DNA from: Podarcis filfolensis
Lineage: Eukaryota
DNA: 64,000 nucleotides
Strand: one strand, 5' to 3'
NCBI GenBank assembly: GCA_964270895.1
Contig: OZ185437.1
The notes below the pieces were generated by a model that saw nothing but the letters and a program-made list of their open reading frames with translations, ran no database searches and was not told the DNA's origin. Numbering within the stretch: the first letter of the stretch is position 1; every line of letters begins with the position of its first letter. This document shows, one piece after another, positions 1,312-47,055 of this stretch. The position numbers were made by a program, and so were the translations under genes.

Positions 1312-12707
<11,396 letters not shown>

Positions 12708-13156
12708 TCCATACTTGAACACAGTGAGTGCCTACTGAAATGTTAGCAATAATTTTAAGTAGAATGTAGTATTGCTCAAGCTTTATGCACAATTAAAACA
12801 TAACTTTTTAAAATCTGGTTGTCTTGAAATTGCACCATTTACAGGAATGTGCATTTCCAGATTTGAAAAATATGCTTATTAGAAAATTGAAACAATACTT
12901 TTTTATATAGCTGTCATGAGATATATAGCAGTCTTCTGAGCAAAGCCTGCTCTAAATATACATAACAGTAATCATACTGAAGTTGGTTGGTCTAGTCTGG
13001 GTCTGGCTAGTGCCTAGGGATTTTAAATCATGCAGCTCTATGGATACTAATAATAATAGGACTTATTTGAAGTAGTTTGAGAATAATGGCCTTAATCTAA
13101 CATCTAATGGGGTTTTATTGGCTTATGGTACATTGATTACATCTTCTCATCTTCAG

Positions 13157-13835
13157 GGAGGAAACCTTGTACATAAAGCAGTAATTGTCAACACTGAAGT
13201 TTTTGTCTGCTCATGAGTACCAACATCTTGATCGATGGAGTTCAGAAATACTGGAAATTATGCTGACTTGTAATTATTTTCAAATTCTATCTATTCACTG
13301 TAATGTATTCTAATACAGTGCTGTAGTAAAGCTGGTGGATTATTTTGTTAAGTTTCAGTTTTGATACATTTTGGTTTAGAGTAATAACTTAATACTTAAG
13401 TTCATTCTTGTTTTGTAGCTTATAGTAGTTTTGTTAGATGGAAGAACTGCACTTCATAGAATAATGTTGATAAAAGTTCTTATTTACAAGGAAAAGTAAC
13501 AATGAGGCAAACAGATCTTCCCCTCTCCATCTTAAATTTAAAATTAGCCCGATTCTGTGGGTTCTGTGTACTGCATCTTTTTTATTGGTAAGATGTAGTG
13601 TATTGACATATTTGCATGCCTAGTGAGTCCCACCTGTAGATTAATAGTGGGTCTATAAATGGCAATGGTAGAATACTGTAATTTTATGAGAACTTTATGC
13701 ATTAACATTTGGCTTCCAGAATCTTCTCTTTACTTGCACAAAAGACTAGTTTTAAGAGAATAAAGGATTAGTGTTTTCATGGATCTATAGTTGTTATGTT
13801 TATTCTTGCTAAATAAAAGCTTTTTAAACATGTAT
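13157..13835 (+). other. DDX43: Probable DDX43 non-coding last exon (3'UTR), polyA signal AATAAA at 13812-13817
   Basis: gtgagt donor at 12724, pyrimidine tract plus cag acceptor at 13155-13156, downstream AATAAA; end coordinate approximate. Confidence 0.5.
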
Positions 13836-15129
13836 CATTTTCATATAGCATGTTCCAGAACTTGCCAAACGGTAGTAATCTGCCTTGCTATAAGATTGTG
13901 AGTCAAACATTGTATCATAATTTGTTTCAATGACTAAAGCACTTCACCTTCATGTGCTGTGTGAGAAGGATTATTCAGTCTCTAGTTTCTAGTTTTGTTG
14001 CACTTGAATATAATTTTCTAGTATGAACAAGAAATAGAAGCAGAGATTGGGATTAGCCATTTCCTATTTATATATCAAATGGATCCTGGGGAATTCTGTG
14101 CAACAAAATATGGTCTGCATTTAGCAATACTGTTGTATACCTATGCACACAAAAAAGCTGGTCATTTGCAGGAGGGCAAACACACACACTCCAAAAGTGC
14201 CCCTAATTAAACATTCTCTTTCTCCCCCATAATTGCATGTAACTTGCTCCCACAGGAAGATATGCACCCAACTGGGGAAATGTCCCATTGTCCTTGCCAA
14301 ATCAGTTCTCTATGCATGTGCACTTTCTCAAATGTTCCTACAATATAAAGGAAAGGTGCAAATAAAATACGAAGCTTTCCTTTCCAAATGTTTAACAGTG
14401 GCAGGGAAGTGATTTGACGCCTGCCTGGAAATGTTTTGAAAGAGCAAGCCATAACTGGCATTGTAAATTGTTGATTTGTACTTGCATCAAAGTACTGAGT
14501 GCAAAACACATAATGAAAAGCGGTCTTTATATTGTGGTGTTATAAACTATACACACTATCTCTACTTACTCAAAGAAAGTTGAAAGTGAGGTACCAGATC
14601 ACAGAACTTTCTTTTTCCTCAGCCCACTTCCTAACTATGCAAGAGCCTATGTATTGCTGCTACCAGCAATTGACTTTATCATGAGACTCTGACCATTAAA
14701 AGCAGTGAGAGAGCATAGCAGTTTTCTTAGAAACCAAGTTCACCACTGGAGCCAGGAATTTATGGCATATGACAGTATCTCACTACCAGTGGCTATTGTA
14801 CCCCCATGAGGTAACGTCATAGCTGCTGGCCACTAACTTTAAAACCCACATAAGTCTCAAGTTTCCTACTCTCCATGGGGTTATGTTCACAGCACCCACT
14901 GGGCCTTCTCAAAAGGGTATGTGCATGTGAGTTTGCTTGTGAGAGGACAGCAAACACTGTCCAACCTTTTTCTTGCCTGCCAGCTACCAGCGATAGCCTA
15001 AGCTATGCATGGGGTGCAGTAAGTTGTCCCATGCCTATCTCCACTTGGCTCCAGAAAGTAACACTGAGAGAATGGGCTTCAGCCCCATTGTAGTTATGCT
15101 GAGAATTCCTCAGGGCAGTTTTATCCCCC

Positions 15130-15860
15130 ATACCATTCAACAGTTATATTAAGCCATTGGGGGAGCAGCCATAAGGGGAATTGGAGTATTATGTCATCAG
15201 TATGCTGACACCCAACCCTCTTTCTCCATATCAGTCAGATGTGGCCCTGCAGTAGCTGGACTGGTGTGTGTGCACAATGGTGGGCTGGAAGAAGGCCAAC
15301 TTGAATCCTGGTAGGACTGAGGCTGTGGGTGAGTGGTTTTCCAGATCAGGGAAATAGGTCAGTTGCCCTCTTCTGAACGTGATTGCACTCCCTCTAAAAG
15401 AGCAGGTACATTGCTTCGGAGTACATCTAACTTTGTCACCAGAGGCCAAAGTGACTTCACTAGCTAGGACACCTGTCAATTAAGGATGGTGTGAAAGCTA
15501 CAATATTTCAGGCAATGACAACTTCCAGATTGCGGTAAGCCAGTACGCTGTATCTGCTGCAATTAGTGCACAATACTTTAGCAAGGCTGCCGCAGGTGGT
15601 GCCCAACTGACAGTGTGAAACACCTGTGCTGAATTGCACTGGCTGCTTAAATACTACCAAGACAGGTTTAAGGTTTTGCTATTGGTATACAAGGCCTTGA
15701 ACAACCCAGGACCATGATAACCTTGCAAAAGTCTTTGCCCTGTCTGGTCAATTCTTGGAGAAATTCTTTACCTTGCATACTTGTTGCCGGTCACTTGGTC
15801 TTACGTCCACTAAAACCAGGAGTTTTGGTGTGGCGGCAATGGTTCTCTGGATTGTACTTC
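15130..15860 (+). mobile_element. Decayed L2 LINE (RT C-terminal region)
   Basis: cagtatgctgac-acccaac (QYAD-TQ) and downstream L2-like peptides with stops and frameshifts; ends approximate. Confidence 0.6.
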
Positions 15861-15889
15861 CAATGTTTATCAGGTAGATACCTATAGTG

Positions 15890-16096
15890 CAGGCACGGCC
15901 AACAGGTAGATTACTGAACGTCTGTGGTAGATCACTGGTAGATCACATTTTTGCCCTGCACCCCCCAAAAATGGGCTTTCCTCCCTAAAGAAAGCTCAAC
16001 AACTGACCTGAACCCCCAAAAAGGTAAGGGGGTAGATCACTGCCAGTTTTTAACTCTGAGAGTAGATCACAGTCTTTTGGGAGTTGGCCACCCCTG
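15890..16096. mobile_element. hAT-type MITE
   Basis: CAGGCACGGCCAAC...GTTGGCCACCCCTG; 8-bp TSD CTATAGTG/CTATAGTA. Confidence 0.75.
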
Positions 16097-16407
16097 CTAT
16101 AGTACTAAGGCATAAGTGTAAAACTCACATCTTCAACAAATAATTACTGGAAGGGTGATCAAACTGTTGATGTATTAATCTGATTTGGTTTTGGTGTATT
16201 TGAGTTACTAAGTCTGATTTATGCTTTGGCAAGAAGGTGGTCACTTTGCGGGAGGGGCAACTCACAATTATCAAGTGTTTTCTGCCTTTCAAGCAAGTAG
16301 AAGCATAATCCCACTTTGTGGTGTCCTTGTAATCCTTTCAGGTGAGTACCCATAGTGTCTTTCAATTTCATTCATAATTCTTTGCATGAATTCAAGTACT
16401 GTAGCTC

Positions 16408-16413
16408 TTTATT
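16408..16413 (-). terminator. Candidate cGAS polyA signal (AATAAA on minus strand, 6 nt after the stop)
   Basis: TTTATT on plus; use is unverified. Confidence 0.3.
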
Positions 16414-16419
16414 TTAAAG

Positions 16420-16762
16420 TTACAGGAAAAATATAGGAAACATATTGTTTTGCTCACTTTCAATTACTTTTGCAAGTGCATTACATTTTGTCTTTTCAAC
16501 TGTCTGAAGCAAGTTGAACTCAGGTATAAAAAAGTGTTTTAACTCGGCCGCTCTGAGACAACCCACAAAATAATCCAGTAGTCTGTTGAAACATTCGTGA
16601 AGATTTGCTGCAAGCCATTCATCATCACGGGGCCACTTGGTACATGCATGAAGAAAGGCAGTTTTGGCAAAGTAAGAGTGGAATTTTTCAAACTGATTTC
16701 TGTTTTCATGTTTTGTTTTAAGCTGCTCCAGCAAATACTTCAGAAGCTTAAGACAATCTTTC
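16420..16762 (-). CDS. CGAS: cGAS exon 5 ([15 protein letters not shown]...FIPEFNLL...NNMFPIFFL*)
   Basis: caacag acceptor; TAA stop. Confidence 0.95.
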
Positions 16763-19700
16763 CTGTTGAGAAATAATAAAAAACACTGTGAAATATGTTA
16801 TTCTGAAACACACATCCTACTAGGAACAATTGATTTAACAGGGATATTTGCTATACACAGACCTGCTTGGGACAGGTTGTGCTATTAGATGGACTGTGTT
16901 GGACTTTTAGATAGCATAGCTTAACCTTTGCCACAAGTAACTTTCATCTTCAGTTCCATAAATGCTTCTAGAAATTGCCTTCCTCACATCATCAAGTTTT
17001 AAATATATACATTTCATTTCTCACCAGTGCCATGCCCTCTAGTTAAGTGCTGTCTCTGAGCTAGAGGGGATGGCAGTGGTGAGAGATGAAAAAGAAGAAA
17101 AGGAGATAGTTATGTTGGCTATGTAAGGATCAACATTCAGAAAATAATTTCCAATTACTATATAGCACTGAATCTTTAAAAGGTAGGATAGGACCCAATA
17201 GTAGGCTGCAACATGAGCACTACCATCATGGAAATACATGACAGAAGATGAAGGAATGGGTTAAAAGTGGTTCCTGATTGCGAGGAGATCGGAGAATTTT
17301 TAAACTATAACAATCTTCCAGCAATTCCAAGTGAAATAATTAAACATCTTAATGCACCAATTACAGCCATGGAAATTCAACAAGCAATCAAGAATGTGAA
17401 ACCAGGGAAGTCACTGGGTCCAGATGGACTGTCAGCCTGCTATTATAAGAAGCCGAAAGAAGCCCTATCACGACCTTTACAAGAGGTAATGAACTATATA
17501 CTAGCCAAAGGCGTAACACCAGAGAAATGGAAGGAAGCATTTGTTACATTAATTCCCAAACGGGACAGACCTAACACTTATTTCAAGCTACAGACCAATC
17601 TCATTACTCAACAATGACTATAAACTTCTTGCACACATCCTGTCAGAGAGATTAAAAAAGACTCTGGGAGAAATAATCCATGAAGACCAGGCGGGCTTTC
17701 TCCCTGGACAACAAATGAATAGTAATATAAGAAATATTATTAATATACTGGGGCACCTAGAAATCAGAAATGACAAACCAGCAGCTCTCATGCTAGTAGA
17801 CACAAAGAAGGCGTTTGATAATATCTCATGGAGCTTTATGAAAACACAAATTAACCTAATGGGATTTGGAGATATCTTCTGCAGAGGAACAGAGGCAATC
17901 TATACGGAGGAGAGAGCAAGACTCATTATAAATAGCAACATCACAGATAGCTGTAACGTAAGAAAGGGGACAAGGCAAGGATGCCCCCTGCCCCCATTGC
18001 TATTTTAGTACTGGAAATCCTGAACAAGAAGATAAGAGAAGATGAGAAGATAAGAGGTGTAGTAATAGGAGGGAAATCTTACAAACTAAAAGCTTTAACT
18101 ACAGAGAACCCAAAAGAAAACTTCTTAAGAACATTAGAATTGATAAATGAATTTGGACAGGTGGCAGGCTTCAAGCAAAAATAAATAAATTACTAGTTAA
18201 AAATATGGAGGTTCAGGAAAAAAGTGAGATCTGTGGCTTGGAAATCAGTAAAAAAGTTAAATATCTGGGTATATGGCTCACAGCAAAGAACATCAATTTA
18301 TTTCAAGATAATTATGTCAGCACCTAGAAGGAGATAAAAAACAATTTGGAAATTTGGAGTAGGCTAAATATTTGCTTTTAGAGAAGAATTTCTATGATAA
18401 AAATGAGTGTGCTTCCAAAAATTATATTTTTGTTTCAAACTATCCAGGTGATAGGAACAGTGAGCTGCTTCAAAGACTGGCAGAAGGATTTACTTGAAAT
18501 GTCAAAAACCCCAGGATTAAGCACCAATTATTAATCAACATAAAGGAGAGGGGAGGTTTTGCACTACCGTATCTGAAACTAACATGAAGTAGCATGTAGT
18601 TGACACTACAAACCACGGATTTGCTGGATCTAGAGGGATTTGACAATAGATACAGCTGGCATGCTTATTTGGGTTATGAGAAGGTCAAAGTACATAAAAG
18701 CTTCTTAAACCATGTGGTTAGGAAATCTCTATATACAGTGTGGGCCAAATATAAGGCCTTACTAGAACCCAAAATGCCTTGGTGGGTGTCCCCAACAGAG
18801 GCATTCTTGGTTAAAAAGAAAAATATGAGAGGTAATTGGGCAACCTATAAAGAATTGCTGGAAGAAAAAAAATAAGTTAAAACTCAAAAAATTCTAAGAA
18901 TCCGAAACTACCTAACAGACTGGATGCAATATTTTCAACTGAATGACACTTTCCAAAAGGACAAAAAATTGGGTGTTTCCACAGATCCTTTGAGACTCCA
19001 AAAAGATCTGATCCAAACTAAATACAAACCAGTCTCTAAAATGTATAGGTTCCTCCTTGACTGGGAGGTCAAGGAGCAGGAAGTAAAATCAGTAATGGTA
19101 CAGTGAGCTAGGGATTTTGGTTATAACATCTAAACGGAATCATGGAAGAAGCTATGGAGGGAAGATATAAAATTCACTGCGTGTTATAATCTAAAAGAGA
19201 ACTGCATGAAAATGCTCAACAGGTGGTATTTAACACTGGCCAAAATGGTTAAATCTAGGTCAAACACATGTTGGAAATGCAGGGAGGTGGAAGGCACAAC
19301 GATCCACATGTGGTGGAATTGCAAAAAAAATCAGAGAATTCTGGGAGATAATATACATGAAACTTAAGAAAATGTTTAAATGTTCCCTCCTCAAGAAGCC
19401 TTAAGCCTTCGCTAGAAATAAGCAATGAAATCCCAAAAAAATTTAAGAGAATTTTCATGTATGCAGCAACAGCAGCTAGAATTTTAATTGCAAAGGCCTG
19501 GAAAAGAGATGCTATCCCATCAAAACTAGATTGGCAGAACAAAATGCAAGAATGTGCAGAACTAAATAGATTATCAGCAAAATTCCGAGATGTCACTGAC
19601 CAAAAATTTAATAGGACGTATATAGAGTCTATCCTAGTTGAAGAATGTAACTTGGGAATCACAATGGGGAGACTGGAGGTCATGATCACAAAATGTCACC

Positions 19701-22700
19701 TACAATAAGAATTAAGCATGGAATGAATGTTTTATTTCCTTCCTTTCTGTTGATTGCTTTGTGCCGTATTTTTAAAATCAATAAAGCACAATTAAAAAAG
19801 GGAAAGGGGAAAAAGTGGGTCCTGATTGAAGATACTTGCTATATATAGGTTTAAACCATGGTTTCCTGGCTTAGATGCAACAGAAAAGTGTTATTTCCCA
19901 AACTCAAAAGTTTTGCACAGGCACAACGCTCACTCTCTGTACAATAAATCATAGTTTATTAGTCTAACATAATTACCTCAGAGTCAGTGAATGCCAGCTG
20001 ATTTAAGTGCACATTCTTTAATATAGGCTTTTGTTAGTCACCAACAATAGCTGGGAGATTAACAGAGCAATCCAAACTCCCTTTGTGCTGAAGGAATAGA
20101 AATGAGGTGTAGGTGTCTCTCTGCCCATCAAGTTCAAGTTTTATTGCGGCAAAAGCCAGTAACACTAAACACCACAAGATCAAACAAAAAGAGATCAACA
20201 ACATCAGAAAGGGGGGGGAAAAAAAAGATTACACAAGGGAACTTTGCAGTGTGCCATTCAACAGAAGAGATTTACGCTTCCTGATTGCTAAAGTGCAAAA
20301 TTTGGCCACCTCATATGATATTGAGCTTGAGGAATCTTCCAGAAGGTATTTTCGTAGAATTTCGGGGGAGGATTCCAAATAATGTTGTAGGGGTATAAAT
20401 TTTGATAAAAGCGGCAAAATAAGTTGAACTCGTTCTTCACTATAAAATTCGCAAAATAGAAGGATGTGTGTGACAGATTCTACCTTATTAGACATACAGG
20501 GGCAGAGACGCACATGCATTGGTACCCGCGTGAATTTGCCGTACAGCACTGCTGAGGGCATTGTCTCAAAGCAGGGTCTAGAGAAAGCCCATCTATAAGC
20601 TTCGTTAGTGATGTTAGTTAAGTAAGGGGCAGCTGCAAAATTAGGCCAAGCTTTTAAGCATCTATACGTCTCCAGGAGTAGGGCGACTTCTTGTTGTAAT
20701 TCGACATCGTAAAGTCTCTGAGTGACAATTGCTTTTGCCTTGTTCAGAGTTTCAATAAAAAGATTTTCAGGGTTTAGGCCAATTTGTTTGATCTTATTAG
20801 TTATTTGCATAAGCCAAGGAGGATAGGGAGCTGCGGCCAGGAAGCAAGCTAACAGTCCCTTAGGATTGTAATGGATTTTCAGCCAGAGGGATATTGCTTG
20901 CTCCCAGACTTTTAATTCCACTCTGGGCAGTCCTGCCTCTTGCCTTAAGACTGCATTAGGTGTACACTTTGGGGTAGCAAATAATGATCTTAAGAATTTT
21001 GATTGTACTGTTTCAAGGGTCTTAAGGTTGGCAGAGGGGCTAATTTGAGAGCCATACAGGAGTTGGGCTAGAGATTTTGCCTGAAAAACTTTTAGGGCCA
21101 TCGGGAGGAAGCCAGCTCCTTTCCTTCTGAATAATCTAAGGATGGCATTTGCACTTCTTCCTGCTGATATAGCTGATGTGGTCAGGTGTGTTGACAGTTT
21201 GGCATTATAAGAGAAAGTAATGCCTAAGTATTGGAAGGTCTTAGTCTGTTCAATGGCGTTTCCCTTTACGCTCCAATTATCTTTCCTGAAGGAGCGGTTA
21301 AAATGTACAATTTTGGTTTTGGCAAAGTTAATTGTTAACAGTTCAGTGTTACATTGGTCACTAAACTTTCCTAAGGCACGTTTCAGGCCCACTTTGGTTT
21401 GAGAGAGAAGAACAGCGTCATCCGCATACATTAAAACTGGTACTTTTCTGCCGTTAGAGAACACGGGGGGGTGGGTTTCGATTTCACGGCAACATGTGAC
21501 CAGGGAGTTAACATAGATGTTAAATAAAAATGGGGCTAATAGGCATCCATGTCTAACTCCCCTTTGGACTGGGATTTCTCTAGAGAGTCTGCCGTCCTGT
21601 GCGAGTCTTATCTGGAGGGTAATGTTCTCATGAAGCTTAATCATCAGAAGTAATAACCTTCTGTTAATACCCATATTGGCCAATTTGGCCCAGAGCCTAC
21701 CCCTGGATACAGAATCAAATGCTGCCTTTAGGTCCACAAAGGCCGCATACAATGACTTTTTCCAATGTTTCACATACTTATAGACAAAATAATCTAACAC
21801 TAAGCAGTGATCTATGGTAGAACGTCCAGATGTAAACCCTGCTTGTTCAATTTCTAGCAAGTCATTATGATCTAACCATTCACATAATTTTAAACATAGA
21901 TGTTTTGTATAAAGTTTACAGATCACATTCAGAAGACTAATTGGTCTATAATTAGCTGGGTCAGAGGGGTTGCCCTTTTTAAATATAGGAACAATTATAG
22001 CCAGTCCCCAATCTTTAGGGATTTCAGTTGTCTTATCTCTCTGCCCATCCTAACAACCTCAATAGCTTCTTGGCAACCTCCACTTGTGGAGTGACACACT
22101 GTCACTCTGTTGGCACCAAGATCTCCCTTCTGCATATGTGGTTGGAATTGCCACTGGTTGCAAGCCCCAAATTGGGATTTTCCACATGTTTTATTATTTT
22201 TCCTCTTAAGAACATGGCAGTTAGTCAATCACTAGACCAGAGGTCGGCAAACTTTTTCAGCAGGGGGCCGGTCCACTGTCCCTCAGACCTTGTGGCGGGG
22301 AGGACTATATGGGGGGGGGGAATGAACGAATTCCTATGCACACTGCATTTTAAATAAAAGAACACAGCATGCAAGAGCACCAGGCAGGCCCCACAAGTAA
22401 CTCAGAGATGCATTTTAAATAAAAGGACACATTCTACTTAGGTAAGCCACCAACCCCCCACGACTCTCTCCTCCCTTCTCCACAGCACTGGATGAGCCCC
22501 AGTGACTGCTTACCTGTGTCTTGCAAGTGGCAGGGGCTGGCGGCGGAGGGAAGATGAGTGGCACGCGAAAGGGCTCTGGAGAGGGGCTGCTTTAAATGAT
22601 GGCTGCTCAAGCGCTCACACAGCTGCTCCTGGCACCAATGAAGCCCTTCCCCTTCCTCCCAGCATTAGGCAGGGCGGGGAGAAGCCGGGAGGAGGCACCA

Positions 22701-25700
22701 CCACGTGGGGGGGGATGGCACAGGCTGAATGGTCAGCGGCAATTCCCCGGGCCGTCTGTGGCCAGATCCAGAAGGAAATTGGGCCAGATATGGCCCTGGG
22801 GCCGTAGTTTGCCGACCCATGTGTTAGACAGTTGTCACAGGGAGTTTTACCATATTCAATCATTCTTGATTTGAGCCTATGGAGATTCTGAATTTTGGCA
22901 CTACATCCATTTTATACCTCTAAACGATAGTTTGGCAGTACATTTAGTTGAGAGTTGTAGCCAGTAAATCCTTACAATTTCCCAGTTTCCTAAGCATTTT
23001 CTAGACTTATATAGTGGCTAAAACTGACAAAGCAAATAGGAGAACGGTAGTTAAAGATACTAACCTGCAGCATCTTTGTCCATTTTGTTCACAACAGGTC
23101 TTTGAGTTGCCATGATTAGTCATTATAGCCTTCTCAATATGTGAAAAAGAGAGTCGCCAAGTGTTTTCTAAGTTTTTTTTTTAAAAAAAGAAACAATGTA
23201 AAATATTGGAAATCTCTCTTTAAATAACATGTTGATTGAGCTATTTTTTAACTGTTTATTAGTGACAGATTATGTGACCCTTTAAGCTACTATGTGAACA
23301 CTGAAACTCATAAGCAAAAACTTGCAGCTGTGGAAAGGCACAACTTTTGCCCTTGTGCTGGTTCTGGCCTAAATGCTGCCACTGTGCATAGATATGCTGA
23401 GCAAAATCCAAGTCAAGTGGTATCTTAGCCTTGGAAAAAGGAATACAACCCAGTTCTTCACTTTTCTGCTTGTATAGGAAGTTTAGCTACCATGAAGCAG
23501 AGAGCTTATCCCACTGTTGTTCAATTGTGCCTTTAGGATTGGTCTGATGACTGTTGCCCAGCTTTAATATTCTTTTAGAATATTAGAATAAAGAATAAAA
23601 GAGATTCCTTCTTAAGAAATAACAGAACAGGGACCCTGGTACTTCAAAACATTTGTTGTTATTTACAGCACATAGAAAGAATAACCAATTACTGCAGTCT
23701 CTTGAAAATAGTCTACCACCACACAACAGCTAGAATACCTGATACAATGACATGACTTTGTGCATTATGTATTTAGCCAAATATAAGCTTTAGTACCTAT
23801 TAAGCACTTTCCATCTTTGGCAATCTTGGGCACGAGGTAGAGTGGTTCGTTTAAAAAGGCATTCTTTACTTTTCTTCCTAGCCATCCTGCAATATCCAGG
23901 CCATTCCTTGTACTTTCACACCAGTTCCGGTGCCGAAATTCCAAAGCAAGAATGATATCTACCGATATAACGGAGGGAGGCTTTCCAATGAGAAGGGTTA
24001 CTGCTGGGCATCCAGGCTTCTTTCTCTCTACATGCACTTCCACATCCAGATCTGTTGATAGCAACAGCAACAATCTAATACAAACCAATTTCATTGTGTT
24101 TCATTAAGATTTCCCCACCTCACAATGACTTGAACAGGAAGTTAAGAATATGTACTTAAAACAATATAGCCAAGTAAGCAGCATCAACTTCAGTTATGGC
24201 ACTTAATGCCAGCAGCTAACACAGACCTTGGAAAAAACAATGTGTTAGTGGCACTACAGTTCTGCTATTCTTACTCTGCAACAAAAAACTAAATTCCAAT
24301 TTAAACACTATGTGGTGAACAAGAATATAACACAATTATTAAGGAAGCTGTAGGCTGGATTCAACAAACAGGCTAGTGGAAGCCTGCACAAGGATTTCTG
24401 CCAGTGCAACAGGTCTTGTCAGCTTTCTGCTCCCCAAGTACCCCCCTCCAAATAGGCTCAGAGGTGGGTGGAAGAACTTCCAGAACAGGGAGGAGAGGGG
24501 ATATAATTCCATTGGGCGAGCTGATATGCTTGTGCTCCTAGAACATTTGGGAAAGGGTGATGTTGAATTCTTTGCAGTATATTTTGGGTTATCTCTTAAA
24601 ATATACAATATTTAATGTTTCCCAATAAAAATAATATCCAATTTGTATAGTAAATGTTTACAATACAAAGTCAATTTTATATTGACATTCTTCTAACCAA
24701 ATATTTCAGTTCAACTAACTTTTTGTTATGGCAAAAATGGCAGGTGTTCAGCATTTAAAATTAACATGACTTTCTGCTTATCAAACTAATGTTTCTAATG
24801 TTTCTATTAAACTAGATGTTTAACTAACTTTCTGCTTATCAAACTAATCTTATCTTCCATTTCAAGCAGCTGAGTTTTCCAATTCCATTGCAGAAATCCT
24901 ACATTACTATTTCTAATTGGACCTATAAATTTCAGTGCGACTAGAGAGCATTCATCTGTTTGCACACAGTATTTGAGGAGGGTTGCTTATCTCTGAAGAG
25001 GAAGGAAAAAAATTAATGTAATGAATACTTACCCTTATTTTTTTTTACTTCTTCTATAATAATGTTCCTCAGTGCTGACAGCATATCAGAAGATGAAAGA
25101 TGCATTTTGTCATCTAAAAATTTAGCTAGATGTGCCTTTTCTCCAGGGTTCCTTTTCAATTTTACATAGAAGAAAGCACCAGAAGCAGCAACATTGCAGG
25201 ATTCTAGTTCAACTCTCATATCTGGTACTTTGAGCATAATATCAAATTCATTTGGGTTAGAAATCTGCAAGACAGACAAAAACATTTCTCACAATTTACT
25301 GTGTCCCAGAATGTGTTAATAACTTGTGTTCTCATGACTCCAGACTAAAGGTCATCCTTACAGCCCTCTGGAGACAACCACTGAAAAGTGCTTCTGCGCA
25401 GTCATGTCATTTGAAATACCCTTGCTAGGTGCATAATAGTGATCAAAACCCACACACATTTGCTTACACCCACAGGCTGGCAGCCTCAATGGCACCCCTC
25501 TGGAGGCTTCATCTGGGGCAAAAATGCTTTCCCCCACCCCATAGCTACAATGAGAGGTCTTTCTTTTGCCCCATGCTTTCCCTGGGAAAACCCGCTGTTT
25601 ACTGCTGAATGGGAACAAACGTCAATCTTCAGAAAACTGACATTTGTTCTGATTCAGTGGTAAACGGGTTTTCCCGAGAAAAGCGATGGGATAAAGTGCT

Positions 25701-27055
25701 TTCAAACTGCCCAGCTGCATGGAGGACCGCCACATAGACGTACTTTCCAGAAGCCTCAACAGGAGGGCAATAATGCTGACATCATCCCCAAATCTCAGCA
25801 TCCACGACTACAGTGTTTTTAAGTCCTTCCAGTAGCACCTTAAAGACCAACTAAGTTAGTTCTTGGTATGAGCTTTCGTGTGCATGCACACTTCTTCAGA
25901 TCCACTGAAACAGAAGTTGCCAGATCCTTCTATATAGTGAGAAGGTGGGGAGGGGTATTAGTGTTTTTAAGGTTTGGGATCTGGCAGCTTTTGGACCAGC
26001 AAGGAAAAAATGCCCCGAGCGGTCTCCAGCACTGCATCTTCCATTACCTTCAGGCGCTCGTAGTAACTGCCGGTGCCCAGCACTTCGACGCAGGAGAAGC
26101 ACGCTTCACTCTTTATTGCTGTTACCAAGATGTCCCTGACATCGTTAACCAGCTGCGCGGCCTTGGAGCGCTCCTCTTTAGCTAGCCTGAGCTTCTCCAG
26201 CACCTGCCTCAAGCTGCGTTTGCCCCTCGGGCCAGGCTCCTTGAGAAGCAGCTTCCCTCGGGCGCCGGCTTCCTTCCCCGCCTTCTCCTGCTCTCTCTTT
26301 CGGGAATCTCTCCTCCCTGCGGAGGCGCTTTCTTTGCCTGGCTGGCCGACTTCTTCCTTCTCCTTGGGGAGAGGCTTCGCCTTCTGGGAAGCGACCCGCT
26401 TGTTGGGGGCAACTACTGCGCTTCCTCGCGGGGCGGGCTCTAGTTTTACCAGAGCACACATAGCCTGCTCGGCTTCCCCCGCCTTTTGCGCGCCCTTTTC
26501 CTTCCGGGAAGCTTTCTTTCCACTCGGGGCAGCAGCGCCGTTTGCTGCTTCGGCTTCGGGCCGTTCCACTGCCGAGATAGTGTATTTTTCCAGCGCCTGC
26601 GTCAGGCTTGTGATGCCGCTCGCGCCAGGCTCCTTGGGAGCAAATGTGCTCTTCAGTTTCCTCCGGGCCCCCCCTACGGTTTTCCCCTGGTCTGGCGGCT
26701 CCTTCTGGGAGCCTTTCTTCCCACTTTGGGCAGCAGCGCCGTTCGCTGCCTGCAGGGGTTCCTCGGCGTCGGCGCGCTCGCCTGCACCGAGCGTGAGCTT
26801 TGCCAGCGCTTGCCACAAGCCAGGCTCCTCGGGAGCAAGTTTGCTCTTAGCTTGGTCCGGCTCCTTCTTCTTCTGGGACGTTTTCCTCCCACTTGAGGCA
26901 GCAACTCCTTTCGCCGCCTGCTGCGATGCCCGGTCTCCCTCGTCGCCCCGTCTGCCCTTCCCTCGCCCTTTGGATCCCGCAGTGCCTCCGTCCCCTTTCG
27001 CTGCCGGGGCCGCCTCGCCCTTCCTCGCGCCTCTCCCGGCTCCACCGCGCCCCAT
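16420..27055 (-). CDS. CGAS: Cyclic GMP-AMP synthase (cGAS/MB21D1), 5 exons, 646 aa
   Basis: complement(join(16420..16762,23065..23167,23797..24051,25033..25264,26048..27055)) = 1941 nt. Contains the NTase motif GSYYE..KIS.PNEFD, catalytic D in [25 protein letters not shown] and the zinc thumb [16 protein letters not shown]. Confidence 0.96.
17281..19810 (+). mobile_element. 5'-truncated L1-clade LINE (ORF2, frameshifted), antisense in cGAS intron 4
   Basis: GKS.GPDG, W..A.VTLIPK, DQAGF, D.KKAFD, G.RQGCPL, KYLG, C-terminal WW.C; AATAAA plus A-rich tail; 18-bp TSD AAAAGTGG(T/G)TCCTGATTG at a TT|AAAA site. Confidence 0.88.
20130..22035 (-). mobile_element. 5'-truncated RTE-X-like non-LTR retrotransposon, open 601-codon RT plus Cys/His C-terminus
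   Basis: [44 protein letters not shown]-terminal [13 protein letters not shown]; AATAAA plus (CTTGAA) tail; perfect 14-bp TSD TCTCTCTGCCCATC (20116-20129, 22036-22049). Clade assignment is from motifs only. Confidence 0.82.
22238..22821. mobile_element. hAT (Charlie-like) non-autonomous element in cGAS intron 4
   Basis: TIR CAGAGGTCGGCAAACT / AGTTTGCCGACCCATG; flanks CACTAGAC/TGTTAGAC. Confidence 0.75.
23065..23167 (-). CDS. CGAS: cGAS exon 4 ([33 protein letters not shown]; zinc thumb)
   Basis: Not in the ORF track; read by hand; ttag / gttagt. Confidence 0.95.
23797..24051 (-). CDS. CGAS: cGAS exon 3 ([19 protein letters not shown]...SVDIILALE...YLVPK...KCLI)
   Basis: aacag / gtacta; third catalytic Asp. 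Confidence 0.95.
25033..25264 (-). CDS. CGAS: cGAS exon 2 ([11 protein letters not shown]...VKLKRNPG...EEVKKNK)
   Basis: tgcag / gtaagt; catalytic E-x-D. Confidence 0.95.
25824..25959 (-). mobile_element. Penelope-like element 3' end in cGAS intron 1
   Basis: Identical to the 6090 copy over >70 nt; 12-bp TSD AGTGTTTTTAAG (25812-25823, 25960-25971). Confidence 0.82.
25866..25903 (-). ncRNA. Minimal type I hammerhead ribozyme motif, sense in cGAS intron 1
   Basis: GGAU-CUGAAGAA-GUGUG/CAUG/CACAC-GAA-AGCUC-AUAC; core intact, one stem I mismatch. Confidence 0.75.
26048..27055 (-). CDS. CGAS: cGAS exon 1 (336 aa: long basic N-terminus, spine helix, GSYYE)
   Basis: Strong Kozak GCGCCATGG at 27055; AAG|gtaatg donor. 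Confidence 0.9.
26180..26920 (-). repeat. Degenerate in-frame ~195-nt (65-aa) tandem repeat within cGAS exon 1
   Basis: Anchor GCCAGGCTC/GGCGGGCTC at 26231, 26432, 26624, 26819 (spacings 201/192/195); second anchor GGCAGCA at 26528, 26729, 26897. Confidence 0.75.
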
Positions 27056-27169
27056 GGCGCCAGAAAAAGATGTCCTCGCTGCGGAGCTCAGCGTCTCCTG
27101 TGTCGGCGCCCCGCGCCCGCCCCGCCACATATGAACCTGCTAGCCACGTGAACGGCCGCATCCTGAAGG

Positions 27170-30979: not shown

Positions 30980-47055
<16,076 letters not shown>

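Follow-up and report, generated by a model that had tools for sequence, protein, structure and literature searches.

The cGAS gene in the window analysed here (the whole stretch of 64,000 nucleotides from Podarcis filfolensis, contig OZ185437.1) carries a small RNA motif of the self-cleaving type on the sense strand of its first intron, which raises the question of whether this motif could act on the transcript of an innate DNA sensor or has simply travelled there with a mobile element.

Host gene and hammerhead motif

As judged from the protein sequence of its exons, the host gene is cGAS. With the exons searched singly, one at a time, exons 2 and 3 matched the Pfam domain Mab-21 and the last exon matched Mab-21_C, the last exon reaching 1.6e-30 against solved cGAS chains versus 1.7e-7 against Mab21L1. 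Exon 1 was assigned to cGAS because the downstream exons identify the gene. It ends with ...YYERLK at 26048, exon 2 begins with ISNPNEFD at about 25264, and the intron between them holds the motif.

26048-27130, minus strand: cGAS exon 1, coding part (open reading frame; identity via the downstream exons)
25265-26047, minus strand: cGAS intron 1, 783 nt, GUAAUG...UUGCAG (from the end of exon 1 and the start of exon 2)
25866-25903, minus strand: minimal type-I hammerhead motif (read from the sequence and found by descriptor search)

Read 5' to 3', the motif consists of the 5' strand of helix I (GGAU, 25903-25900), the catalytic box C3-A9 (CUGAAGA, 25899-25893), an extra bulged A between A9 and G10.1 (25892), helix II with its loop (GUGUG/CAUG/CACAC, 25891-25878, closed by the G10.1-C11.1 pair G25891-C25878), the GAA of G12-A14 (25877-25875), a palindromic AGCU at 15.x-16.x (25874-25871), C17 (25870), which is a non-G as required and places the predicted cut between 25870 and 25869, and the 3' strand of helix I (AUAC, 25869-25866). 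The AGCU palindrome would permit an intermolecular helix III in a dimer. Helix I of this copy has three pairs and one G25902-A25867 mismatch, with 4-5 bp expected for the class, and an AUG in loop II opens a short reading frame that stops after 9 codons. The catalytic boxes, the unpaired nucleotide before 10.1 and the palindromic 15.x-16.x are together those of a minimal type-I hammerhead. The initial annotation had listed the core, a 5-bp stem II, the palindromic AGCU, a CUC cleavage triplet and the G-A mismatch in stem I, all of which are present, and its assignment to the minimal, dimer-type Penelope type-I hammerheads with a palindromic helix III is supported.

A relaxed descriptor (CTGANGA, 8-30 nt, GAAAGCTH) matched three times in the 64-kb window versus 0.12 matches expected, and each of the three lies in a copy of the same repeat family. 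The Rfam hammerhead models (Hammerhead_1, _3, _II, HH9 and HH10) gave no match at the gathering score in the 64 kb and none at E<=10 in the 301 nt around the motif. The initial annotation had named a search with Hammerhead_1 as a check on its reading, and this negative result is expected, since the curated models want a helix III hairpin, which is absent from the motif, so that it is not evidence against the motif. The hammerhead motif in cGAS intron 1 is thereby confirmed as a real feature at the level of sequence.

The insertion and its repeat family

The motif lies within a short insertion, the parts of which could be delimited on the minus strand as follows.

25960-25971, minus strand: upstream copy of the target-site duplication, CTTAAAAACACT (exact match; empty site in relatives)
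25824-25959, minus strand: 136-bp insert, a 5'-truncated hammerhead-carrying copy of a Penelope-type retroelement (bracketed by both duplications)
25824-25865, minus strand: tail 3' of the cut site, ending with GGAAGGA at the duplication junction and holding the polymorphic sites of the family (end point shared with the third copy; family variants)
25812-25823, minus strand: downstream copy of the target-site duplication (exact match)

The 12-bp duplication CTTAAAAACACT is perfect, with two exact copies on the minus strand of the 64-kb window and about 0.01 expected by chance. Between them the insert runs, 5' to 3', through 58 nt of pLTR-like sequence, the hammerhead and the 42-nt tail, and makes up about a fifth of the 783-nt intron. 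The splice donor GT begins at 26047, the duplication begins 76 nt into the intron, and the predicted cut falls after intron nucleotide 178, leaving 605 nt between the cut site and exon 2. Both the 136-bp Penelope-end insertion with its perfect duplication, as the initial annotation had described it, and the distances that it gave from the donor to the insertion and to the cut agree with the sequence.

The orthologous site is empty in contigs of three related species (runs X4, X5 and X14). In run X14, one contig of 2269 nt joins 25581-25811 directly to 25960-26200. It lacks 148 nt, with 12 ambiguous letters, and this gap equals the insert plus one copy of the duplication; in the contigs of runs X4 and X5 the gap at this site is 150 nt. 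Presence or absence of the insert across lacertids had been proposed as a check in the initial annotation; its absence from three relatives, with an exact empty site, indicates an insert that is not conserved and is confined to the lineage of the window's species. A flanking duplication with an empty orthologous site, and copies cut short to differing extents on the 5' side that share one 3' end (the "tail") downstream of the hammerhead, are the marks of a Penelope-like insertion and were found here; they support the view that the insert comes from the end of a Penelope-type retroelement, which duplicated its target site at insertion.

Two further copies of the family, which account for the other descriptor matches, lie on either side of the gene.

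6068-6262, minus strand: second family copy, forming a hairpin of about 90 bp that is nearly perfect and has the 5' half of the hammerhead in its loop (sequence, blastn and fold)
36560-36730, plus strand: third family copy, hairpin form, upstream of cGAS, with one substitution in helix II (sequence, blastn and fold)

Both are inverted duplications, an arrangement that is a further mark of Penelope-like insertions, with the junction inside or beside the palindromic helix II. They fold into long perfect hairpins with the motif buried, at -151.5 kcal/mol for the copy at 6068-6262, some 10 kb downstream of the cGAS stop codon, and -123.5 kcal/mol for the copy at 36560-36730. The right arm of the latter shares the GGAAGGA end point with the focal insert. 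Sensitive blastn revealed no inverted partner of the focal insert in the 64-kb window, the cGAS transcription unit included, so that the earlier statement that this copy has no inverted arm stands. The copy at 6130 was considered as a dimer partner in cis and rejected, since it lies about 10 kb past the stop codon and is locked in its -151 kcal/mol hairpin. No open reading frame for a telomerase-like reverse transcriptase with a GIY-YIG endonuclease was found in the window; its sole reverse transcriptase, at 20232-22049, has an RVT_1 match and, by eye, a LINE-type motif.

The focal copy is young, differing from the copy at 6090-6169 at one of 80 positions, namely the helix I mismatch. In the contigs of the relatives and in the copies at 6068-6262 and 36560-36730, the family consensus of helix I is GUAU/AUAC, a perfect 4 bp; position 25902 carries the pairing base in about 99% of family depth, and the G-A mismatch of the focal copy is private. 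The 78-bp family core reaches a summed contig depth that exceeds the flanks about 10^5-fold in the three relatives (1.2-2.9 million over 25834-25905 versus 11-40 in the flanks), a value derived from 4,000-5,400 contigs per run that gives an order of magnitude and not a copy number. Family depth climbs stepwise in the 5' to 3' direction from 25977 to 25834, a stepwise 5' loss that is expected of 5'-truncated retrocopies, and over 25906-25977 it amounts to 4-20% of the core depth. Variants above 10% occur at 25843, 25858 and 25862, with 25864 at about 5-10%, and none was seen between 25865 and 25901 in the relatives' contigs. Since the core is intact and holds no variant above 10% inside the motif, the family's ribozyme is probably functional in some context.

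The family may tentatively be classified in another way, as a short non-autonomous, retrozyme- or SINE-like derivative of Penelope pLTRs rather than a set of truncated copies of an autonomous element, a classification that we regard as possible and somewhat short of probable. The highly abundant core spans no more than about 78 bp and breaks off sharply at 25901-25903 in most family copies, the hairpin form is frequent and has a common extra 5' module (loose ends at 25824), and the 9-codon frame in loop II is unlike the ORF of Anolis Poseidon, which starts in stem II. Animal retrozymes have also been argued to be non-autonomous Penelope derivatives, with a reptile consensus of about 176 bp (bioRxiv 10.64898/2026.07.22.740005). 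However, a longer subfamily continues beyond 25959 in the relatives (loose ends at 25960), which fits 5' truncation of a longer element, and tandem arrays of the hammerhead family were not seen in the window. The question of autonomy has no bearing on function.

Predicted fold and likely fate of the intronic copy

Folding predictions with ViennaRNA suggest that the catalytic box of the focal copy would be engaged in another structure.

25890-25917, minus strand: predicted competing hairpin, in which ACUUCU..UUUCAG of the insert pairs with CUGAAGAAGU and buries C3-A9 (ViennaRNA)

This hairpin is the minimum-energy structure in the 55-nt segment, in the 160-nt insert and in the whole 783-nt intron, with pair probabilities of 0.87-0.89 and with C3, U4 and G5 unpaired at a probability of only about 0.02. 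The hammerhead-competent structure is predicted at -2.1 versus -9.8 kcal/mol for the minimum, a gap of 7.7 kcal/mol. Helix I of the focal copy has a pair probability of at most 0.035 in the local fold and below 0.001 in the whole intron, and helix II reaches 0.65-0.71 in the whole intron; in the consensus-like copy at 6068-6262, helix I forms with a probability of 0.86-1.0 in the local 55-nt fold taken without the inverted arm. According to these values, which come from nearest-neighbour folding that takes no account of tertiary contacts, proteins or the order of folding during transcription, a stable and self-sufficient active fold would not be expected in the pre-mRNA, given the energy gap and the lack of a helix III in the monomer. 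The "free-folding" hammerhead of the initial annotation is contradicted by the same predictions, as the catalytic box pairs with the insert's own upstream UUUCAG at about 0.89 and helix I forms at less than 0.1% in the intron.

Dimerisation would offer little remedy. Helix III is possible only between molecules, the 4-bp AGCU/AGCU duplex contributes about -2.5 kcal/mol, and such a helix would probably be too weak for pairing in trans, with an implied affinity in the millimolar range. The 14-nt palindromic helix II could form a duplex of -25.2 kcal/mol versus -4.1 kcal/mol per hairpin. A domain-swapped dimer through helix II was considered as a route to activity and rejected on geometric grounds, as the AGCU segments would lie at opposite ends of the duplex and form no helix III.

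In raw RNA reads of a relative (run X23), the family core is covered about 300-deep on each strand and shows no pile-up of read ends at 25869/25870, a test that would not register cleavage if fewer than about a fifth of the molecules were cut; 5'-OH and cyclic-phosphate ends are also poorly captured by standard RNA libraries. Published experiments could detect no cleavage by a lone minimal hammerhead, and cleavage by dimers was weak and for the most part confined to Mg2+ levels that are unphysiological (PMC4209133).

The feature is therefore very probably a young, 5'-truncated copy of a highly repeated Penelope-type family, an ordinary inactive relic and not a regulator of cGAS. Target-primed reverse transcription would have brought it to an A-rich site in cGAS intron 1, 76 nt from the intron start, and only in the lineage of the window's species. 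The family probably keeps the hammerhead since the element itself uses the motif, presumably in tandem or dimeric form and/or together with its own protein, and the solitary intronic copy is most likely catalytically silent, because it lacks a monomer helix III, has a mismatched helix I of three pairs and holds its catalytic box in the predicted hairpin. Splicing would probably remove the intron, which would then be degraded together with its passenger insert, without a ribozyme effect on cGAS. The insert, its duplication, the empty site in the relatives, the abundance of the family and the fold predictions are direct results, and from them we infer that the focal copy neither cleaves nor has a regulatory effect.

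It is improbable that the insert affects cGAS by a route without a ribozyme, in which an acceptor-like site and structured RNA would lead to cryptic splicing, exonisation or slower intron removal. The insert does hold a polypyrimidine-CAG acceptor-like sequence, CUUCUGUUUCAG/UGG, at 25905/25904 (sequence 25916-25904), and a possible weak donor, AAG/GUGCUA, at about 25841-25833, and it adds about 150 nt of structured RNA to a short first intron of 783 nt, but the downstream donor is poor. Intronic transposon insertions are mostly neutral.

Very improbable is assisted cleavage, in which the silent motif would be cut once the reverse transcriptase/endonuclease of an active element binds the adjacent tail, and only in element-expressing cells. 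The hammerhead of Anolis Poseidon cleaves only with the element's protein and does not depend on the active site of the endonuclease (PMC11167929), the focal copy retains the 42-nt tail, where the Anolis protein begins reverse transcription (PMC11167929), and the family motif is invariant over thousands of contigs. Nevertheless, the window holds no Penelope reverse transcriptase gene, the protein-binding region of the Anolis element comprises the first 172 nt of its ORF (PMC11167929) and far exceeds the 42-nt tail, and the obstacles of a weakened helix I and a competing hairpin would persist. Furthermore, no RNA-seq reads start or end at the Anolis cut site in vivo (PMC11167929), and the effect would fall equally on every sense intronic copy instead of being specific to cGAS.

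The proposal of the initial annotation, that the solitary hammerhead cuts the cGAS pre-mRNA, either co-transcriptionally or through helix III pairing in trans with a Penelope transcript, and thereby lowers the mRNA or frees an exon-1-only RNA, appears extremely improbable. It can draw on the intact catalytic core in sense orientation, on the lack of a long inverted arm in the focal copy, on transcripts of the family core on both strands in the relative, and on the CPEB3 intronic ribozyme as a precedent for tuning a host gene (PMC10919898). Against this, the site is empty in three relatives, the core is predicted to be sequestered with helix I below 0.1%, the trans helix has 4 bp at about -2.5 kcal/mol, single minimal hammerheads are inactive in vitro (PMC4209133), and the 605 nt to exon 2 would be transcribed in about 10 s at 3.5-4.1 knt/min, whereas the CPEB3 ribozyme has 9931 nt downstream and a half-life of 2-3 min. 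Splicing is moreover undisturbed when a slow hammerhead cleaves the intron and is blocked when a fast HDV ribozyme does so (PMC2995048). Tuning of the cGAS pre-mRNA, or a retroelement-sensitive switch, is thus unsupported, given an insert confined to one lineage, its predicted misfolding and the weak helix in trans. If the ribozyme did act on cGAS, retroelement activity would be linked to innate DNA sensing; no finding here points there. That a dormant hammerhead is reshaped by the element's protein or by an abundant family transcript, with the cGAS pre-mRNA then cut 178 nt into the intron in retroelement-active cells, has an equally minimal likelihood, and would, if true, mean that a retroelement blunts the DNA sensor of its own cDNA.

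For the inactive relic that we favour, the caveat in the initial annotation that a lone monomer may simply be inactive turns out to be the best-supported outcome, in view of the predicted misfold and the published inactivity of monomers. An intact hammerhead core should accordingly not be equated with an active ribozyme, since a private mismatch in helix I and a competing hairpin can silence it.

Comparison with known systems

The CPEB3 HDV-like ribozyme and the amniote HH9 and HH10 hammerheads resemble the focal copy in placing a motif of the self-cleaving type on the sense strand of an intron in a protein-coding gene. Unlike the focal insert, which occurs in one lineage, they are conserved at an orthologous locus in mammals or amniotes, and they are active monomers kinetically matched to a long downstream intron, whereas the focal copy is of the dimer type, is predicted to misfold and has 605 nt downstream. 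Closer in kind are the non-LTR retrozymes (Cervera & de la Pena 2020; Li, Clavereau & Pollet 2026), short non-coding type-I hammerhead repeats and kin of Penelope pLTRs with dispersed monomer copies, many of them intronic; in Xenopus, some 44% of the retrozyme copies overlap an intron (bioRxiv 10.64898/2026.07.22.740005). Tandem arrays and circular RNAs are the defining features of retrozymes; the lacertid family forms no tandem array in the window.

Anolis carolinensis Poseidon (PAc, PMC11167929) is likewise a lizard Penelope-like element with a hammerhead at the pLTR end and AT-rich target DNA, its insertions end at a fixed internal point 3' of the hammerhead, and no in vivo ends are found at its cut site. 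In contrast to the lacertid family, with its 9-codon frame and no linked reverse transcriptase in the window, the PAc ORF starts in stem II, with the cut 26 nt after the start codon.

The closest likeness is to the minimal Penelope hammerheads (Cervera & de la Pena 2014, PMC4209133), which share the type-I arrangement of CUGANGA and GAA, the unpaired nucleotide between A9 and G10.1, the G10.1-C11.1 pair, a short helix I (4 bp in the lacertid consensus) and a palindromic 15.x/16.x replacing a true helix III. They too are mostly dispersed single copies from truncated elements, with some opposite-strand pairs 100-700 bp apart. The focal copy differs from them in its private helix I mismatch, and its helix II has 5 bp and a 4-nt loop in a perfect 14-nt palindrome versus 7-8 bp in the trematode families (PMC4209133); the lacertid family itself is absent from that survey, whose reptiles are turtle and snakes only. 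Set beside these systems, the copy in the cGAS intron is a matter of routine annotation, one more dispersed, transposon-borne minimal hammerhead of a known class that happens to lie in an interesting gene, and the insert in one species versus the precisely empty site in three relatives provides a clean natural experiment on Penelope hammerheads in sense orientation within introns.

Features of the host intron and its insert

Five cGAS exons were delimited on the minus strand from stop-to-stop frames, each exon being searched separately, and the matches to Mab-21 and Mab-21_C together with those to solved cGAS chains (last exon, 1.6e-30, versus 1.7e-7 to Mab21L1) identify the gene as cGAS. The exon-1 ORF, which covers 26180-26920 (minus strand), is long (387 aa to the donor) and had no Pfam match. 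Intron 1 spans only 783 nt (26047-25265, GUAAUG...UUGCAG), the end of exon 1 reading ...CUGAAG/GUAAUG with the donor G at 26047, and it holds the focal copy, a 136-bp Penelope-type insert (25824-25959, minus strand).

cGAS exons and parts of the insert (all on the minus strand; hammerhead parts read from the sequence)
Exon 1: ends ...GSYYERLK at 26048 (stop-to-stop frame)
Exon 2: begins with ISNPNEFD near 25264 (Pfam Mab-21)
Exon 3: within 24100-23768 (Pfam Mab-21)
Exon 4: near 23180 (stop-to-stop frame)
Last exon: 16797-16423 (Mab-21_C)
25971-25960 and 25823-25812: 12-nt target-site duplication CTTAAAAACACT, flanking the 136 nt
25903-25900: helix I 5' strand, GGAU
25899-25893: core CUGAAGA (C3-A9)
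25892: single extra A
25891-25878: helix II, GUGUG-CAUG-CACAC
25877-25875: GAA box
25874-25871: AGCU
25870: C17
25869-25866: helix I 3' strand, AUAC

The hammerhead reading of the initial annotation was thus recovered letter for letter, including one helix I mismatch (G25902-A25867). The predicted cut falls between 25870 and 25869, 178 nt into the intron and 605 nt before exon 2. The 12-mer CTTAAAAACACT occurs twice in the 64 kb, both times flanking the insert, against 0.01 occurrences expected. A relaxed motif descriptor gave three matches in the window, which has no N runs, against 0.12 expected, and all three are copies of one repeat. The Rfam hammerhead models, a search that the annotation had proposed, gave no match to the motif even at E<=10; a motif lacking a helix III hairpin should give this outcome, which still counts as a failed membership feature for the hammerhead class.

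Other elements accompany the insert in cGAS. An unrelated second repeat lies in intron 1 (25438-25689), with summed contig depth of 5,000-25,000 in relatives versus 11-40 in the flanks and between-species indel differences at 25573-25644. The long intron between exon 4 and the last exon contains, in sense orientation, an open 606-aa reverse-transcriptase frame (20232-22049, minus strand; Pfam RVT_1, 3.7e-34) with the LINE-type motifs NYRPISLL and YADD. The insert itself supplies a polypyrimidine-CAG acceptor-like site, CUUCUGUUUCAG/UGG (25904-25916, minus strand), about 143 nt past the exon-1 donor, and a weak donor-like AAG/GUGCUA near 25841-25833; judging by such signals, exonisation of insert sequence would be possible.

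A young copy of an abundant family

DNA contigs of three related species and RNA reads of one were aligned to 25150-26200 (4,000-5,400 contigs per run). All three relatives yielded a single-copy contig spanning the site without the insert: in run X14, one 2269-nt contig passed from 25581-25811 directly to 25960-26200, a skip of 148 nt with 12 ambiguous letters that equals the insert plus one duplication copy exactly, and runs X4 and X5 showed a 150-nt skip there. These empty sites mark the insert as recent and lineage-specific, and the perfect duplication claimed initially is genuine. The core (25824-25901), in turn, is massively repeated in all three relatives, with summed contig depth of 1.2-2.9 million versus 11-40 in the flanks, a measure that is not a copy number and is taken as an order of magnitude only.

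Family depth drops stepwise toward 25977, some copies running past 25959 (loose ends at 25960). Such a profile is that of retrocopies truncated at the 5' end, derived from a longer element with the hammerhead on its sense strand. The base giving a perfect helix I (GUAU/AUAC) makes up about 99% of family depth at 25902, so that the G-A mismatch is private to the focal copy. Variants above 10% sit in the 42-nt tail, within 25824-25864, at 25843, 25858 and 25862 (30-60%), with a further one at 25864 in about 5-10% of family depth. None above 10% was found within 25865-25901 across thousands of family contigs from the three species; the source copies of the family have thus conserved the motif, a pattern suggesting that source elements keep the ribozyme under constraint.

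Within the window, an 80-nt core of hammerhead and tail is common to three copies at 94-99% identity, the helix I mismatch being the sole difference of the focal copy from that at 6090-6169. The copies at about 6068-6262 (minus strand; copy 1) and 36560-36730 (plus strand) are near-perfect inverted duplications with arms of about 85-90 bp. The arms meet within the 14-nt palindromic helix II or next to it, so that template switching at this palindrome is suggested. Both copies fold as near-perfect hairpins (-151.5 and -123.5 kcal/mol) in which the motif is buried, and their transcripts, if made, would be long, perfectly paired double-stranded RNA. The two also have in common an extra 5' module (GTTACAG...CCGTGT.GGTCTGCC...A-rich), which is also the commonest continuation in the relative's RNA reads (loose ends at 25824). 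The 64-kb window holds no inverted partner of the focal copy, as had been noted.

These family features agree with published Penelope-like elements. Their pLTRs carry minimal hammerheads in which helix I is short, a base between 9 and 10.1 is left unpaired, G10.1 pairs with C11.1 and positions 15.x/16.x are palindromic, and the copies are mostly single and truncated, some being paired on opposite strands (PMC4209133). The Anolis lizard element Poseidon has a tail downstream of its hammerhead, because reverse transcription begins internally, and AT-rich target DNA (PMC11167929). This feature set supports the identification as a Penelope-type element end with a dimer-type minimal hammerhead. No reverse transcriptase/GIY-YIG ORF linked to the family was found in the 64-kb window, and the family may instead consist of short, non-autonomous derivatives such as a 2026 preprint argues for.

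Predicted folding and cleavage

The insert had been described as free-folding, and ViennaRNA nearest-neighbour predictions, which take no account of tertiary contacts, of the order of folding or of proteins, run against this. For the 55-nt segment around the motif, the minimum is -9.8 kcal/mol versus -2.1 kcal/mol for the hammerhead-compatible structure, and in the minimum-energy fold the catalytic box CUGAAG is paired with a UUUCAG that lies upstream within the insert itself. Helix I pair probability in this context is at most 0.035, versus 0.86-1.0 in the consensus-like copy 1 without its inverted arm. When all 783 nt of the intron are folded, the competing hairpin reaches 0.87-0.89, helix I pairs stay below 0.001 and the unpaired probability of C3, U4 and G5 is about 0.02, helix II persisting at 0.65-0.71. 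Since these folds bury the catalytic box, the description is unsupported.

Helix III is possible only intermolecularly, where AGCU would pair with AGCU over 4 bp at about -2.5 kcal/mol; such a duplex would have roughly millimolar affinity, far from anything that two nuclear transcripts would attain in trans. Pairing between molecules is far stronger through the 14-nt palindrome of helix II (-25.2 kcal/mol), and in a domain-swapped dimer formed through it helix III still could not form.

Published single minimal hammerheads show undetectable cleavage, and dimers and trimers cleave weakly, mostly at unphysiological Mg2+ (PMC4209133; summarized in PMC6765202). The Anolis Poseidon hammerhead cleaves only with the element's protein present, and its cut site coincides with neither the start nor the end of any RNA-seq read (PMC11167929). 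Raw RNA reads of one relative, of which 94% continue into other loci with strands about equal, had no end pile-up above threshold at any core position, a weak, family-level form of the proposed RNA-end check that cleavage in under about a fifth of molecules would escape.

Consequences for cGAS

Given the empty sites, the predicted misfold, the published inactivity and the 605-nt gap, the proposal of a cGAS regulator or retroelement-sensitive switch is unsupported. Cleavage assisted by a protein or partner when the element is active would be very improbable. Most likely, this short intron carries the insert as a passenger that is young, neutral and catalytically silent. Elements of this kind commonly sit in introns; in Xenopus, about 44% of the retrozyme copies have an intron overlap (2026 preprint). 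As far as the summary of Dye et al. 2006 and Fong et al. 2009 in PMC2995048 goes, splicing stayed efficient in vivo when a hammerhead cut the intron, and only the fast HDV ribozyme aborted it. In CPEB3, the only regulatory ribozyme of an intron that has been studied well, a half-life of 2-3 min is matched to 9931 nt of downstream intron transcribed at 3.5-4.1 knt/min (PMC10919898), whereas the 605 nt left after the cut in cGAS would pass in about 10 s at that rate; to compete, a ribozyme in this intron would have to rank among the fastest known, and its class is among the slowest.
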